Shown here piece by piece: positions 1-6,837 of a stretch of 64,000 bases of DNA. Numbering within the stretch: position 1 is the stretch's first letter; each line of letters opens with the position of its first letter. Origin of the DNA: Schizochytrium sp. TIO01 (Eukaryota; Protista; Bigyra: Labyrinthulomycetes); assembly GCA_004764695.1 (NCBI GenBank), contig SMSO01000007.1, positions 1,681,270-1,745,269 on the forward strand, in the 5' to 3' direction. Under the pieces are notes generated by a model. The model did no database searches. It had not been told where the DNA came from and was given only the letters and a program-made list of their open reading frames with translations. The position numbers and the translations under genes were made by a program.

Positions 1-2451
1 AATAACCTTACCGCGTGTTTCCTCTGGATTCATTTCAAGCATCTCTTGAACTTGCTCACGGGTAGCAAAAGCAAGCAAGTGCGCATGGCGCTCTAGAGCA
101 TCAAAGAATGCCCACGTTGACACAGGAAGATTGTGTGGACGATTCAGGCGTTCAGCTTGTTCGCTAAATTTATGATGCAGATAGCGCATGATGTCACGCG
201 AATTAGAGGTCCATTTGTTTTCAAAGAACACAGCAGGTGTTCGCGCAGACGGAACCGCATCTGTAAACCACGCAGGTTTGTTGTCCCAATCTATGTCAAT
301 GATTTGGTACGGGATACCTGCTTCCATGATGAACATGGTGACCACCCGAGAATATGGGCATAACCGAACTAAATAATTCTTTACTCGCACACAGCCATAA
401 CAAATGTAGACAACATTAGCAAGAGGCTCAGCTGGCAGAGAAGTTTGCACTAAGGCTCGTGATGTGTCATTGCGAAGCTCTTCCTTGCGTTTGCGCCGCC
501 GTCTCCTAGAGTGAGAGGCGACACCACTCCAAAGCTTATCTCGAGCTTGTTCTGAGTCACTTGCCTCGGACTCAGAGGGGATATCAGAATCCCCGCTTGC
601 ATCAGCAAGCGCCTCCATTAATTCTTCATGGGTAATACCTACAGCAGCCTGCACAGCGTCGAATTTGTCAAAGTTGGCGCGAATGCCTTTCCCGCCAGCC
701 CGCCTTTCCATCATATCGCCAAAAAGAATACCTCCAAGTTCTAGGTCTATTCCTTTATATTGTGTTGTACAAACAAGCATATCATTATAGACAGAGTCAT
801 GCCCCACAAAGCTGACACTTAAAACAATATTCGCCATTTCATCTGGATCAAGTAAAAATCTTCGCAATGGTGACTTTTGATCAATTTCATGAATAATAGT
901 AGCCACAGCCGTAATGGTTGGGGGGAAGCTTGCTTGTAAATTCTCGTAGCTCACAAAATGTTCTCCCTCCTCGGTGTCGTGAAATCGTAATAACGCTACT
1001 GCCACACGGGTCTCGTAAACAAGGTTGACACGTCGATTACCTACACGAATTAACAGTGTAGGCTTCCCATCACGGGTTGTAACGAGAGCCTTCTTGCTAA
1101 AAACGATGTCTGGTTTAGGAATCTGAAATTTTGATACAACAACAGACAAAACAATCACATTGAGCATAAGACCAGTAAACTGTTGAGCGCAGGCAAGTGT
1201 ATAACAGCCGTACGAACTCGGGAGACAAGGCCCATAGCCAAGTGTTAGTACATTGCTTGTTGCATAGACAGCAGCAATTCCCAGAGTGCCTTGTAGGAAC
1301 GTATCCATTCCTGATTGGCACTCAATACTATTTGCAATAGGCCAAGTGAGTAGTGACCAAAAAAAGCAAGTAATTACATACGAGAGCAAAGACAAGAAAA
1401 ATACAAAGGCCCAACTCCAGTCCAAGAGTACATAATACCAGTTTTTGGCCTCATACCACTTTGACGACCCTGTCCCATGCAGAGCAGATCGTTTCTTGCG
1501 TTTTCCTGATTCAATTTGATCTGGCGCATACCGGCGCTGGGTGTATGAATGTTTATTCTTACGTCGCAGGCGTTCGACACGAAATCGTCGCCATTCGCTC
1601 AAGGAGAGCCCCATGTGATGAGTCTGAAGTCTAGGCATGCGACACTCTTTGCATACATCTTCATCGTTGTGCCGGTGGAAGTGAGAACCAAACCTGGTCT
1701 TATTCCTGCGCCTTAAGCCGGTTTCCTCGTTATGAGTACTCATTTCACTTGCAGATCTAGGTAGGCTGCCCATGGAATTCCTTCGAGTGTTCGGTCCCAG
1801 TGGAAGTTCGCCACTCTCGACAATCATGGCATTCTCCTTGGGATTTTCCGGCTCCTCATCGCTTGATGGTGTGTTACCCATCTGTACTTCATCTGGCGTG
1901 TACACGCACGTTTGCAATGCCGAAATGGGTTCATTTGCGTGCTCACCCCCAGAAGTTGCATTTGACTTCGATCCTGGCATCGTTCCAGACTCAACATCGT
2001 GCTCTATATTCGCCTCGTTGGAAGAGTTTGCCAACGTTGATGTCGAACTCGATGTTCTGCGATTTCCTACACTAGCACTGTGCCTCGTTCGACAAGCATC
2101 GTCATGATTCCTGATGTCATGGATACTCATAACATCTAAATCCTCAACAGCCAGACTTCCATTGCTATTGTCATCGGTGACGTTGATATTATTATTGTCC
2201 TTGTTGTTGCTGCTGCTGATGTTCATGGCACGGTTCATGGTACTGGGGGTGAACCTGTTGGTCAAGCGGTGTGAAGGGAGCGCACTACTTTCACTAGATT
2301 GTCCGCTTGCAGCATCAGAGTGCGCGATGGAGCGAGCTCCCGACGCCTCCTGTGAGGAGCCCGTGCCCATGAGACGGCAGCTGCAGCGATGTTGGAGCAG
2401 ACCAAAGCGACACTGATGAGGGACTTTCTCGTTGCGATCTCCAAGTGACAT
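1..2451 (-). CDS. Inward-rectifier potassium channel (Kir family) fused to a C-terminal DHAR/CLIC-like glutathione-transferase domain; 3' end truncated by window edge
   Basis: Manual translation: stop-free frame from ATG 2451 (alternative ATG 2370; in-frame TAA upstream at ~2509-2511) to base 1. Disordered N-terminus, slide helix/TM1 WYYVLLDWSWAFVFFLSLLSYVITCFFWSLLTWPIA (~1440-1333), filter TLGYG (1245-1231), TM2 ACAQQFTGLMLNVIVLSVVVSKF, Kir cytoplasmic motifs FSKKALVTTRDGKPTLLIRVGNRR, TEEGE, TIIHEIDQKSPL (~900-865). Then YICYGCVRVKNYLVRLCPYSRVVTMFIMEAGIPYQIIDIDWDNKPAWFTDAVPSARTPAVFFENKWTSNSRDIMRYL (GST-N; CPYS at 360-349). Absent from the ORF track because it has no stop within the window. 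Confidence 0.93.
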   Translation of the reverse strand, partial: MSLGDRNEKVPHQCRFGLLQHRCSCRLMGTGSSQEASGARSIAHSDAASGQSSESSALPSHRLTNRFTPSTMNRAMNISSSNNKDNNNINVTDDNSNGSLAVEDLDVMSIHDIRNHDDACRTRHSASVGNRRTSSSTSTLANSSNEANIEHDVESGTMPGSKSNATSGGEHANEPISALQTCVYTPDEVQMGNTPSSDEEPENPKENAMIVESGELPLGPNTRRNSMGSLPRSASEMSTHNEETGLRRRNKTRFGSHFHRHNDEDVCKECRMPRLQTHHMGLSLSEWRRFRVERLRRKNKHSYTQRRYAPDQIESGKRKKRSALHGTGSSKWYEAKNWYYVLLDWSWAFVFFLSLLSYVITCFFWSLLTWPIANSIECQSGMDTFLQGTLGIAAVYATSNVLTLGYGPCLPSSYGCYTLACAQQFTGLMLNVIVLSVVVSKFQIPKPDIVFSKKALVTTRDGKPTLLIRVGNRRVNLVYETRVAVALLRFHDTEEGEHFVSYENLQASFPPTITAVATIIHEIDQKSPLRRFLLDPDEMANIVLSVSFVGHDSVYNDMLVCTTQYKGIDLELGGILFGDMMERRAGGKGIRANFDKFDAVQAAVGITHEELMEALADASGDSDIPSESEASDSEQARDKLWSGVASHSRRRRRKRKEELRNDTSRALVQTSLPAEPLANVVYICYGCVRVKNYLVRLCPYSRVVTMFIMEAGIPYQIIDIDWDNKPAWFTDAVPSARTPAVFFENKWTSNSRDIMRYLHHKFSEQAERLNRPHNLPVSTWAFFDALERHAHLLAFATREQVQEMLEMNPEETRGKVI

Positions 2452-2738: not shown

Positions 2739-5700
2739 TTATATCTTGTCCTCGAGCTCCTTGATGAGGCAAACCATAATGTTTTCGTTGTCGTATTTCC
2801 AGTACGGTAACTCAAGGTTCCTGCGAATGCAGATTGTTGCAAATGCTTCTGGCGTGATTTTATCATCGTCGTCGTCGTCCTCATGGTCGTTTACTTCGAT
2901 CCAGAGATCCATGACCTGCGCCTCGTTAAGGGGTGGCTGGGGCTGGGCTGTACTGAGAAGTTTTTGAAATTCTTCGAATGAAAGGACACCATCTCCATTG
3001 ACATCAAAGGTACGAAAAAGCTGCATGATCATTGTTCGGTCAAGTTCAATTTTGCTCAAGAAGACCTGTGTAACTTTACTAAGAAACAGATCTAGATTTA
3101 CAACCTTGATGTCACTTGTGGTAGCCTTGTTCACCTCAGATTCAGGTACGCTGTTTGCATCAATCCATTTCAATATCTTTTGTCGAAATGCACCAGGCAT
3201 CGCCCAATATCTCTGTGGAACACCCGAGCCATCATCAACTTCGTCTACAATATCCGAACTTGCTTTGAGGCCATCACCATCAACCAGTCGGAAAACCGTG
3301 CGAATCGCACGGATTGCACTTGTACTTTGAACCACAGTTTGGTTTGTTCCATACTCTAGAGCTTTTGCAATAAGATCCGAGCGGGGGAAGACGGATGCGA
3401 AAACACTCATTATGGCATCGCAGAGCGTGGGAGTATAATGTTCAGGATCAATAACGCCAACAAGCATGCCAAAGAGCTGAATTCGAAGTGAATGTTCGTA
3501 CTCATCTCGAATTGCTTGCACGATTCCGTAAAGGTATTCCTCGGCAAGCTTTTTAAGTCCATATTTTTGAGTGAAGTAATGCAAAATAGTTTTCGCGAGA
3601 GCATGTGACTTGCGCCCTGACTCCCGAAGAGTTTTATCACTTTGCACTTTCTTTTGGTAAACTTCACCAATAATAACATCTTCGAGCTGAGAGATCTCGA
3701 TTTTCCGTGCGCGACGGTGCTTTGGTGGTTTGTGAAGATACTTCTCCCAGGGTAGCGATTCGTTGAGCAAAGGGGTAATGAACTTTGCTTCAATGCGGCG
3801 CAATGTTACCATAACAGCTAGTTCGCCACCTTCTTTAAGAAGAGATTTGTTGCGAATACTTACTGTTGCAAATGTAGTATTCTCCAGCTTGGAGCGTTTT
3901 GATTTTTGTTTCTGTGGCTTTTGCATCGAAGTTTCCGACGTATTTGGCGATTTCAAATCCTTATCTTGGTCTTCACCATCCTTTTCAGCTTTCTTTGAGC
4001 TATCACCGTGTACTTCATTTGCATCAAGATCATCACAATTATCTCCTTCGGCAGCCTTCGTTTCGGCAGTTTCCGTTTCGAGCTCAGACTCTTTGCCTAA
4101 GGCCTTCCCATCTTTGGTTCGTTCGTCTTCATCGTCTTCATCGTCTTCGTCGTCTTCATCATCTTCGTCGTCTTCATCGTCTTCAAGGTTTTCGTCATCT
4201 TCATAGTTTTCGTCATCTACAGATTTCTTAATTGCCTTGATAATCAGTCGCCTAGCATTGTCACCCGGATGCTCATACATTGGTATTGAGAGATCGGTTT
4301 GCGAATATTTGTTTGCAGTACGATCTGATGATTCTGCCTCTTCCCATTCAATTGTTGGCGAGTGTCCTGGTTTGTTGGCAGTGCCTTGTACATCATTAAC
4401 GATTGTTAGCAAGCGTTTAGAAGACATGGTAGTTACAACATTTGGTGCAATCATATCAAGCTCATCCGCGTCAAGAAGTTGCATAAACTCTAAGACAAGA
4501 TCAACCCGATCTCGGCTTGACTTGGTTTGCCGAAGAACCTCTCGAATAAAGTTGGTTGCTCGACCATCAGCTGCACTTTCTAATAATGATGCAACAAGAC
4601 TACGCTGCCCAGCTTCATCAAGCTCCATAATCATGGCTTTAAGATGTGGCTCATTTGCTACTTTAGTGAGCCAATTTGCCATGACTTGAGACTGTTGAAT
4701 CCCATCTAATTTTTGTACGTGATTTTCAATTCGATCTTGCAGCGCAAGGGATGACCGTCTTTTATTCGATCCGCCAACAACAACAACCTTTCCATATTCA
4801 TTACGTTCCGGCTCCTGCTCATCAAATTCACTGACTTCATCGACTGCGTCAGGGTACACATCAGTTTCTTCATCTTCTACATCTTCCCCTTCACCAGAAC
4901 TCTTCGTGGCACGAACCCTCTCGAATAGGGTCTGACGATTGTCTCGGGGTCCACCAGCACTGCTTTCACTAGCATTGACATTTTCATGGGACTGCCATGA
5001 ATTGCGTCTACTGCCATCTTCCACAGAGTAGTCTGACCAAGATCGTTCAAGACGCTGCCTGCGTGCGAAAGCTACTTTGCGCATATGCTGAAGGAGGCGT
5101 TCCAATGCGTCTGTGACTCCAGAAGGCTTAAGACGGCTGATTTCAAGCCTCAGAAGTTGGAATTCCTGATCCTCCTCATCACACACTGCAAGCGCCTGCA
5201 GAATGTCATTACTATGGTCAAGTGCTTGCTGAAGCTCGACTATCTTGCTATCTCTTAATTGAACTTCACGATGAAGCATTTCATTTGCTTGTTCCAAAGC
5301 CGCGGATAAACTTGGGTCAGTATCACGCTGATACACTCTGCGTTCGTCCTCATAGCGCTCTAACAAAAAATACAGAACCCTATGTTCAGCTCTCCATAAT
5401 CGCAACAGTTTTGCACTGCGCTGCCAGCAAGCATCCGTTACCTTTTGTGGTACAAGATCTATGCTGCCAACCATTGACTGTACAGACACGTCTTGCACGT
5501 CTTTTGCGGGAATTATAAACTTTTGTAGAAAGTTTAAATCTTCCCGCAAGAACTGCAAGCAAGCATCAAATTCAGTACCGCATACTTCAATACATTCTTT
5601 GCCAATTTGCACCGGGTCAGTGTGTGCTTCCGACAATTCTCTTAGCCATTGATCCACACGTGGAGTTTGTATTGAAGATGAATATCTCGAGTTGCTTGGG

Positions 5701-6837
5701 TGTAAGCTGCTTCTTGTTTTCTCTTCAAGCTCGTCTAATAGCTCGTGAGTGTCGTTCTCATGTAAATACGTCCATTCATCACCTTTCGATTCTAGTGTAA
5801 CATTATGTTGATCCTCTTCATCGCGAGTTCCATTTGAGTGACGGGTTGCACCAACCACTGGGGATTGTGGCAATGGATCGAGGTGGTTTTGCTGTCGTCT
5901 CCTTCGGAGTTTAATTTTTTTGTGATACAATTTTTCAAGTCTACAATCAATGTGCGAAAGACGCTCGAGCTCATCGCTGGTAACAGGAGAGCTATAGCGG
6001 AGCATGTTTTCCGTACATAACTCACTCGCATCAACTGTTTGCAATACATGAGAAGTATAATGCCCAACCTTGCCTGTATTTGTTGTTGCAGACTTTGGCG
6101 ATCCTAGCTCCTCAAGCTCTTGGCGGGCAGATCTTCTCAACAGCTCAGCTTTACTAATCGGAAGATCAAGTGCTCGCTGCCCACTGCGTTTTATTGGGCT
6201 TAAGCTTCTTGATAAGCGTTGCTTTCCATGAGAATCTTCAGCTGTAGTAGTATTTATAGCGGGGCTTCGACTGCGTGTTTTCCATTGAGGTTGTGGTTTG
6301 AGCTGTACTTTATCTGTAGCTCCTCTATTTGGCGAATGTAAGATTGGATAAATGTCATCGTCATCGTCATCATCTATTCCATCATCTTTTCCGCCATCTC
6401 CTGCACCTTGAAGCTCGGTCAAATCATCACTTTCGTCAACATCGGATTTAGACGACTTCTTTAGCCTGTTCTGAGAGGGTGTCATATTGAAGGACATGCC
6501 TTCGAGCATAGTATGCTGCATGCTTCTAAATTGCCTCGATTCAACTGGAGTGGATGACGTCGCTCTGAGAGAGACGTGGCCAGAGGATACCCCCTGCCCT
6601 CCACGCCGGCTCCGTATGTCGTCAGGTGGGCAAGGTAATCTAACAACTTGTTTGCCTACTGACCTCCGTACTGACTGACTCCCTGAATATTGTACGCATG
6701 CACTTTTGTAGCAAAATGTAAATCAGATCGATAAAAGTAAAACTAATCCTCTTAAATGGTATTTAATGTCCAATAGTTCTGCCAGTTACATACACACCTC
6801 TGAAAGCAAACCCGTGATACTGAAGGCTTTCTAACAT
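2739..6837 (-). CDS. Large coiled-coil/acidic protein with C-terminal EF-hand(s); C-terminal third resembles TSNAXIP1-like/ciliary EF-hand proteins
   Basis: 1260-aa ORF 2739..6521 with canonical EF-hand FDVNGDGVLSFEEF, a degenerate second hand (DHEDDDDDDKITPEAF), an acidic DDEDDE tract and the motif YFTQKYGLKKLAEEYLYGIVQAI. The frame stays open to ~6720. A putative 40-nt first exon (ATG 6837..6798) and GT-AG intron 6797..6683 splice in frame (inferred). Confidence 0.8.

Follow-up and report, generated by a model that had tools for sequence, protein, structure and literature searches.

Inward rectifier potassium (Kir) channels, which rank with the most thoroughly studied ion channels, are tetramers whose N- and C-termini are cytoplasmic; to our knowledge, none of their known regulators (PIP2, G proteins, ATP/SUR and polyamines) is part of the channel polypeptide. 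S-glutathionylation closes Kir6.1 and glutaredoxin reopens it, and the Kv-beta aldo-keto reductases (AKRs) are thought to link redox state to the gating of Kv channels (PMC11631806). In plant dehydroascorbate reductases (DHARs), the catalytic cysteine (Cys20) cycles between the thiol, the sulfenic acid and a mixed disulfide with glutathione (GSH), and a hinged alpha2 region moves (PMC5307357). Here we describe a gene that places a Kir channel and DHAR-like glutathione transferase (GST) modules with a catalytic cysteine (Cys-GST modules) on one polypeptide. It lies at the left end of a 64,000-nucleotide stretch of the genome of Schizochytrium sp. TIO01 (Labyrinthulomycetes; assembly GCA_004764695.1, contig SMSO01000007.1, positions 1,681,270 to 1,745,269 of the forward strand), hereafter the window, and extends beyond it.

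One reading frame encodes a Kir channel and GST modules

The Kir-GST gene is a single intron-less open reading frame (ORF) on the minus strand, 1609 codons long from its first ATG, which occupies L003:891-5720 (window 2451 to -2378) with no stop within. L003 is the numbering of the flanking DNA, which was read beyond the left window edge; its position 5720 is window 2451, and L003:891-3269 corresponds to G000:C6:1678891-1681269 in our numbering of the 64-Mb, 37-contig genome (G000), where the window is G000:C6:1681270-1745269. Residues 1-817 are encoded in the window (1..2451, minus strand), and the remainder (L003:891-3269) extends the ORF by another 2.4 kb to the left, up to the stop codon at L003 891-893. 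Inside the window the frame stays open from position 2508 to the left edge, with the first ATG at 2451.

A preliminary description, made from the window's letters alone, had noted a stop-free minus-strand frame at 1-1440 and read in it a complete Kir channel with a TLGYG filter, ending in ...IRANFDKF near position 661, then a linker of ~85 residues and a GST N-terminal domain, all within a single gene that the accompanying ORF list had missed. The channel and the domain are as described, the frame has no stop throughout window 1-2451, and the linker measures ~80 residues; the gene is absent from the list because ORFs running off the window end are not listed. The leftward extension it had called for, in pursuit of the GST C-terminal domain and the stop, yielded two more Cys-GST modules, a domain of GST_C type only, and the stop codon. 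Along the protein the order is the N-terminal region, the Kir core, a disordered linker, three Cys-GST modules with the motifs CPYS, CPSS and CPYS, the GST_C-only helical domain, and the terminal sequence DIEDLLFCI.

That this is a genuine gene fusion we consider practically certain. Collinear full-length orthologs are found in Hondaea fermentalgiana (P0002, 1524 aa, 59% identity), in a JGI genome (P0003, 46%), in Thraustochytrium sp. LLF1b (P0004, 42%) and in Mucochytrium quahogii (P0005, 40%), and two of these four Labyrinthulomycetes orthologs come from transcriptomes. In the MMETSP transcriptomes, the ORFs of Thraustochytrium, of Mucochytrium (marked 'type:complete') and of Amoebophrya likewise hold the Kir and GST parts together. 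Compared with P0002-P0004, modules 1 and 3 are 40-65% identical and module 2 is 30-48% identical; this uneven conservation matches the pattern that would be expected of domains and linkers. Public sequencing data agree with the assembly: in each of four runs, from four studies, one contig spans L003 450 to ~5664 without a joint, insertion or deletion, which answers the concern about a misassembly between the two parts. Strain differences in these contigs comprise 27 synonymous against 7 non-synonymous changes, spread across all parts of the ORF, and purifying selection acts on the linker and on all modules.

The alternative, that an assembly error, an overlooked stop codon or an intron separating Kir from GST makes two adjacent genes look like one, has two points on its side. 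The RNA nature of the four runs is a guess, and the spanning contigs also run into the convergent downstream gene, so that they are no stand-alone proof of a single mRNA. The depth of the contigs does fit RNA, being 20-60 for Kir-GST, with the upstream gene present only as short pieces at depth 1-5. Against an artefact stand the same collinear ORF in four other genera, down to 40% identity, the fusion in independent transcriptome assemblies and in dozens of unrelated protists, the stop-free frame with its joint-free contigs, and the purifying selection over the linker and all modules. Taken with these, the artefact is hardly credible.

Residues 1-283 (window 1603..2451, minus strand) form a poorly conserved, low-complexity N-terminal region with 6-16% identity to P0002-P0004, in which strain variants are still mostly synonymous. 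The contigs of the four studies all stop at window 2388-2397 (L003 5657-5666). As the first in-frame ATG is located 5' of this common end, the true start codon may be Met28 (ATG at window 2368-2370), and the protein would then be ~1580 aa long.

The Kir channel core

Sequence profiles, solved structures and predicted folds agree on the channel. The Pfam model IRK_C (PF17655) matches residues 449-602 (E 1.7e-15; 57.5 bits against a cut-off of 22.5). In comparisons with the sequences of solved structures, the Kir part, over the full span from the first transmembrane helix (TM1) through the cytoplasmic domain, aligns with KirBac3.1 (its residues 35-269, E 3.6e-18), TM1, the pore and TM2 falling on KirBac3.1 residues 35-131; further matches are Kir2.2, Kir4.1/5.1, GIRK2, Kir6 and Kir7.1. 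An AlphaFold (AF2) model of residues 320-840, built on the ortholog alignment, has a mean predicted local distance difference test score (pLDDT) of 79.6, with a confident Kir core and pore helices above 90, and Foldseek matches it to KirBac3.1, Kir2.2, GIRK2 and Kir6 at E 1e-17 to 1e-20. Among the domain profiles proposed in the preliminary description, IRK_C, GST_N and GST_C match, whereas the IRK transmembrane model (PF01007) finds no match at E <= 1 in the Kir-GST protein, where only Ion_trans_2 (E 0.23) appears. Since PF01007 does match the genome's three other Kir genes, which lack GST, and some members of the clade described below, the transmembrane region is best regarded as a divergent Kir pore.

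Ahead of TM1, at the position of the Kir N-terminus and slide helix, lies a conserved basic segment (residues 284-340, window 1432..1602, minus strand) that includes an invariant SGKRKK.SALHGTG; 54% of its columns are invariant between the query and P0002-P0004, and it is helical in the AF2 model. The transmembrane pore (window 1120..1431, minus strand), delimited by the KirBac3.1 alignment, the model and Foldseek, consists of TM1, a turret with Cys378, the pore helix, the filter, Cys409, and TM2 with Asn431. Its K+ selectivity filter, located by motif, is TLGYG (residues 403-407, window 1231-1245, minus strand). The filter is kept in three of the four close orthologs, as TLGFG in P0005, while P0003 has TLSSSV instead of TLGYGP; across the whole clade (alignment A3) it varies among GYG, GFG, GSG, GAG, GWG and SLS. 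In a by-eye alignment, Asn431 falls on what we take to be the rectification-controller position (Asp172 of Kir2.1), presumably as in weak rectifiers, and almost every clade member has Asn there. The pore loop lies between Cys378 and Cys409, which, again by eye, presumably resemble the extracellular disulfide pair of eukaryotic Kirs.

The cytoplasmic beta-sandwich domain (residues 445-600, window 652..1119, minus strand), recognized by PF17655 and by its fold, ends with ...IRANFDKF at window ~661. With 59% invariant columns and 67-85% identity to P0002-P0004 it is strongly conserved, in contrast to the ~80-aa linker that follows (residues 601-679, window 415..651, minus strand), where 10% of columns are invariant and identity is 20-44%. 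The linker, delimited by pLDDT and conservation, is acidic and then basic in composition and disordered, with pLDDT below 50 at residues 621-655 (model residues 302-336).

Fold and active sites of the GST modules

Pfam searches with the whole protein and with pieces of it reveal three GST N-domains as well as GST_C domains, the latter strongest at residues 1430-1517. Module 1 is matched by GST_N_2 (E 1.8e-16), GST_N_3 (E 3e-13) and CLIC-like_N (E 8e-6). Among solved structures, the C-terminal part is closest in sequence to Arabidopsis DHAR1, the alignment spanning both GST domains (E 6.7e-14); other DHARs and Omega and Lambda GSTs come next. A second AF2 model, covering residues 676-1560 and again built on the ortholog alignment, has a mean pLDDT of 82.2 and a predicted template modelling score (pTM) of 0.62; in Foldseek it matches Leishmania TDR1 best (E 3e-11), then plant DHARs with template modelling (TM) scores of 0.86-0.88 at a root-mean-square deviation (rmsd) of ~2.5 A, and CLIC1 at a TM score of ~0.8. 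In sequence as in predicted fold, the C-terminal part is of the DHAR/CLIC/Omega type of Cys-GST.

The two-domain Cys-GST fold, a thioredoxin-like N-domain with an all-helical C-domain, is complete in modules 2 and 3 and partial in module 1. Module 1 (residues 680-812, window 16..414, minus strand; Pfam and models) has the thioredoxin-fold N-domain with 2-3 C-terminal helices, and the elements that the preliminary description had quoted for it, CPYS, NKPAWF, the cis-Pro TP and KWTSNS, are all present where they were placed; the active-site CPYS (Cys698) is at window 349..360 (minus strand). A spacer, disordered in the model, leads to module 2 (residues 862-1132, L003 2325-3137, minus strand; CPSS, C879), and this is followed by module 3 (residues 1163-1390, L003 1551-2243, minus strand; CPYS, C1179) and the GST_C-only, all-helical domain (residues 1404-1560, L003 1041-1511, minus strand), which is delimited by Pfam and the model. 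C698, C879 and C1179 are invariant in the orthologs.

In DHARs the GSH-binding G-site is formed by Lys47, Lys59, cis-Pro61 and Asp72-Ser73 (AtDHAR numbering), and dehydroascorbate (DHA) is held in the H-site by Lys8, Asp19 and Lys210 of OsDHAR1 (PMC5307357). The G-site residues are present in module 3 (C1179, K1206, M1217, which is K in orthologs, cis-Pro1219 and E1230-S1231) and in module 1 (K725, R737, cis-Pro739 and N750-S751, with Asn for Asp), while module 2 is largely degenerate in this respect. At the H-site, the DHAR-specific Asp19 is replaced by V1178 in module 3 (HMMER alignment) and by L697 in module 1, and the equivalent of Lys8 seems, by eye only, to be Gly. The close likeness to DHAR that had been claimed thus stands in sequence and in predicted fold and fails at Asp19. 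Because this residue is Val or Leu, we file the modules as DHAR/CLIC-like Cys-GSTs rather than demonstrable DHARs.

Such active sites could also belong to an enzyme that the channel merely anchors. The modules would then be thiol transferases, deglutathionylases or DHA reductases that do not control gating; their task might be to hold cysteines of the channel itself, or ones nearby, in the reduced state, or to regenerate ascorbate on the spot. The complete DHAR-like fold and full G-site of module 3 (C1179, K1206, cis-Pro1219, E1230-S1231) speak for this, as do the family-wide retention of the catalytic Cys and the glutaredoxin-like activity of CLICs and DHARs, glutaredoxin being the enzyme that reverses Kir6.1 glutathionylation (PMC5307357, PMC11631806). 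We nevertheless regard a tethered enzyme as unlikely: Asp19 is V1178 or L697, no conserved Cys is found at the position equivalent to Cys176 of Kir6.1 (by-eye alignment; the end of TM2 has no Cys), the genome also has a stand-alone Cys-GST, and anchoring leaves unexplained why this type of enzyme is confined to one Kir clade, in 1-5 copies.

The likeness to CLIC1 (TM score ~0.8) raises a further alternative, in which oxidised GST modules insert into the membrane, as has been claimed for CLIC1 and AtDHAR1, and add an anion or other conductance beside the K+ pore. AtDHAR1 is reported to give ion conductance (PMC5307357), and one relative of the Kir-GST protein is named 'chloride intracellular channel protein 1' by JGI. 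The channel function of CLICs is itself debated (PMC10920813), however, and no sequence feature specifically favours insertion; we consider this second conductance very improbable.

The C-terminal nonapeptide DIEDLLFCI (L003:894-920, minus strand), defined by the ortholog alignment, is identical in three of the four aligned thraustochytrid sequences and reads DVEDLLFCI in P0003, so that 8 of the 9 positions are invariant in all four. Its DLLFCI end is nearly invariant in a 10-row alignment that includes the GST-only relative P0006. The nonapeptide fits an acidic dileucine motif ([DE]xxxL[LI]) with a hydrophobic-x-hydrophobic end, and it may be a sorting or PDZ-type signal.

A protist clade of Kir-GST proteins

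An exhaustive HMMER search with residues 320-1519 of the query against 1.84 billion cluster representatives gave 1532 matches. Among the best 150 of these 1532, domain mapping identified 27 proteins that combine Kir with GST, either part coming first, and Pfam then detected GST domains in 9 of 10 long proteins that the first mapping had missed. For the phylogeny, a maximum-likelihood tree of the Kir core was calculated from 96 rows (quick search, LG+G4; midpoint root for drawing only). All GST fusions fall on one side of a branch with an SH-aLRT of 100. Within this clade, GST domains are present in 30 of the 41 rows (phmmer alone under-called them, at 18/41; Pfam and an iterated profile brought the count to 30/41), and the 11 rows without them are all <=502 aa long. 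None of the 55 rows outside the clade has a GST domain, and the median length there is 305 aa.

Named members of the clade are Amoebophrya spp., Pycnococcus provasolii, Pseudoscourfieldia marina, Chloropicon primus and a Picozoa assembly, with many more on marine metagenome contigs. Their spread would take the family across Labyrinthulomycetes, Syndiniales, prasinophyte-grade green algae and Picozoa. The proteins bear automatic database names such as 'Inward rectifier potassium channel 2', 'GST N-terminal domain-containing protein' and 'chloride intracellular channel protein 1'. The earlier statement that no Kir-GST fusion had been characterised agrees with our literature search, which left out most subscription journals and in which no description of such a fusion was found; the architecture is not a one-off but belongs to a whole protist Kir clade that is visible in public databases under automatic names and, as far as found, uncharacterised. 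Look-alikes from the ESM Atlas score <=0.77 and are ordinary Kir clusters of oomycetes and diatoms; they were taken as leads only and not used.

Two entries, P0006 and P0226 (1035-1036 aa, one copy on a 283-kb ENA contig), match the Kir-GST protein in their run of GST modules and in the C-terminal motif but have no Kir part, and represent either a GST-only paralog or a truncated gene model.

Across the clade the GST modules sit N- or C-terminal to the pore, in 1-5 copies per protein. As both position and copy number vary, the constraint on the modules would appear to be functional rather than positional.

Proposed role of the modules

A module profile seeded from modules 1 and 3 and iterated allowed 77 modules from the top-150 proteins to be aligned. 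The catalytic Cys column holds Cys in 74 of 75 filled rows (53/54 outside thraustochytrids), a count skewed to look-alikes by a seed taken from the Kir-GST protein itself, which weakens it as evidence for the sensor role proposed below. Pro follows the Cys in 36/75 rows; the cis-Pro column is Pro in 65/65, and the Lys and Trp of DKPxW are kept in 58/75 and 71/75 rows, respectively. We take the near-invariance of the Cys, the cis-Pro and the K/W of DKPxW as probable selection on sensor chemistry.

This conservation also bears on a purely structural role. GST-like domains act as scaffolds in eEF1B-gamma and aminoacyl-tRNA synthetase complexes, and CLICs bind ezrin; GST folds on a Kir channel could similarly serve assembly, cytoskeletal or membrane attachment, or trafficking, with no redox role. 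Module 2 and the fourth, GST_C-only domain are degenerate, the number and position of modules vary widely, DIEDLLFCI resembles a sorting or PDZ-type signal, and CLIC5A binds ezrin (PMC12494564), all of which would suit a scaffold. Yet the Cys, cis-Pro and DKPxW elements are near-invariant across very divergent members and a pure scaffold needs none of them, so that a non-catalytic role seems improbable.

The most economical reading, to which we would give an even chance, is that the modules are built-in glutathione/thiol-redox sensors that modulate gating. With three modules per subunit, cytoplasmic termini and a tetrameric channel, about 12 Cys-GST modules would lie under the pore; the preliminary description had envisaged four such domains, a number now corrected to 12, with a GST_C domain on each subunit in addition. 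The state of the catalytic cysteines would be set by GSH/GSSG (reduced and oxidised glutathione), oxidants or glutathione conjugates, and would shift the seating of the modules on the Kir cytoplasmic domain. This shift would in turn change the open probability, and K+ conductance and membrane potential would thereby be tied to the redox state of the cytosol. The preliminary description had put forward a coupling of K+ flux to GSH/GSSG, ascorbate or electrophile status; of this, a redox or glutathione coupling is a reasonable proposal. The response of Kir6.1 to glutathionylation indicates that Kir gating is able to respond to such chemistry. Extended to the whole group, the same idea would turn these proteins into a large marine-protist family of cation channels gated by glutathione or by thiol redox state, with the fused Cys-GST modules as ligand or redox sensor; we propose this more tentatively, as a possibility somewhat short of an even chance.

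Several observations weigh against the sensor reading. The C-domain of module 1 is shortened to 2-3 helices and predicted at low confidence, and module 2 has lost most of its G-site (K to C, no D/E-S), keeping only the Cys and the Pro. The AF2 monomer model shows no confident packing of Kir against GST (pTM 0.48), with a disordered 35-residue linker between them. Several clade members have non-canonical filters (TLSSS, GSG, GAG, GWG) and may be not K+-selective or not conducting, so K+ selectivity is not required of every member.

Neighbouring genes and other Kir and GST genes of the genome

Convergent with the 3' end of the Kir-GST gene are two tandem paralogs on the plus strand, of 253 and 273 aa and 39% identical to each other (L002:5298-6059 and L002:6677-7498; G000:C6:1676567-1678767). 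Both match Glyoxalase/VOC Pfam models only below the cut-off, and a sequence search against solved structures gave no match, the best hit being an unrelated chlorophyll-binding protein at E 0.28. The nearer paralog ends 124 bp from the Kir-GST stop, and because the contigs of the sequencing runs merge the two genes, their 3' ends are suggested to overlap. Further downstream lies the ORF of an ABCB-type half-transporter, 797 aa, with visible Walker motifs (L002:460-2853, minus strand). The upstream neighbour (window 2739-6521, minus strand) is a 1260-aa ORF in which acidic residues (D/E) form long runs and two EF-hands lie at the C-terminus (EF-hand_7, E 5e-8); it ends 288 bp upstream of the first ATG of the Kir-GST gene.

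A protein search of the same genome with the Kir core recovered only the Kir-GST gene, and a search with Pfam profiles added three divergent GST-less Kir paralogs of 571 aa (G000:C30:7414046-7415761), 1202 aa (C35:2540835-2544443) and 866 aa (C34:569809-572409). In the 1202- and 866-aa paralogs the IRK_C match is interrupted, inside a single ORF, by a large insertion; that of the 866-aa protein contains a weak C2H2 zinc-finger match. The stand-alone Cys-GST of the genome is a 490-aa protein with a CLIC-like N-domain and a GST_C domain (G000:C31:4757382-4758854; GST_N_2, E 2e-19).

Comparison with known systems

With as many as five Cys-GST modules covalently attached per protein, and conserved across several eukaryotic supergroups, this Kir clade would represent a new regulatory principle for Kirs. 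If the sensor reading is true, it would add a class of Kir regulation beside PIP2, G-beta-gamma and ATP/SUR, in the form of a natural single-chain transducer from redox state to membrane potential, with possible use as a genetically encoded device that couples the glutathione redox state to the membrane potential. It also bears on why the DHAR/CLIC fold repeatedly associates with ion conductance. Thraustochytrids are grown industrially, and genetic tools have been reported for the group.

With Kir and KirBac channels (KirBac3.1, Kir2.2, GIRK2, Kir6.x), which are its best matches in sequence and fold, the Kir-GST protein shares the pore of two transmembrane helices, the TxGYG filter and the IRK_C beta-sandwich. 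It differs from them in an N-terminal extension of ~320 aa, in a C-terminal GST array of 1000 aa, and in belonging to a separate protist clade, apart from the three GST-less Kir paralogs of its own genome. To the plant DHARs (AtDHAR1, 5el8; OsDHAR, 5d9t) the link is through module 3, which aligns over both GST domains (TM score 0.86-0.88, rmsd 2.5 A), and through the retained equivalents of the CPxS catalytic Cys, Lys47, cis-Pro61 and Asp72-Ser73; unlike DHARs, the modules have Val or Leu for Asp19 and seemingly, by eye, Gly for Lys8, and they are triplicated on a channel. CLICs (CLIC1, 1k0n) have the same monomeric Cys-GST fold with a CPFS-type active site, as reflected in the CLIC-like_N match and a TM score of ~0.8, but they are free soluble proteins of debated channel role, whereas here the fold is covalently joined to a K+ pore. 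Leishmania TDR1 (4ags), the top Foldseek match, is likewise a protist protein with tandem GST modules on one chain, of the Omega class; it is a reductase that forms soluble trimers, has two modules and lacks a membrane domain.

KefB and KefC are similar in concept only, in that K+ movement is placed under the control of glutathione and its adducts. Kef is a CPA2 antiporter-type protein whose KTN/RCK domain binds GSH; neither CPA2 antiporter nor KTN/RCK domains were detected by Pfam anywhere in the 1609 aa, and the likeness to Kef is one of functional analogy. Another comparison is with Kir6.1 (KATP), whose gating is altered by glutathionylation and restored by glutaredoxin (PMC11631806), although there the modified Cys is in the channel and glutaredoxin is a separate protein, and the equivalent TM2 Cys is absent from the Kir-GST protein. 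A conceptual parallel for an oxidoreductase-fold module on the cytoplasmic face of a K+ channel, with a proposed coupling of redox state to gating, is that of Kv-beta on Kv1 and Kv4 (PMC11631806). Kv-beta differs in its AKR fold with NADPH, in being a subunit of its own and in the pore on which it acts, which is voltage-gated and not of the Kir type. The Kir-GST protein would be a direct counterpart of this long-debated idea, in a version that is easy to test because sensor and pore share one polypeptide.

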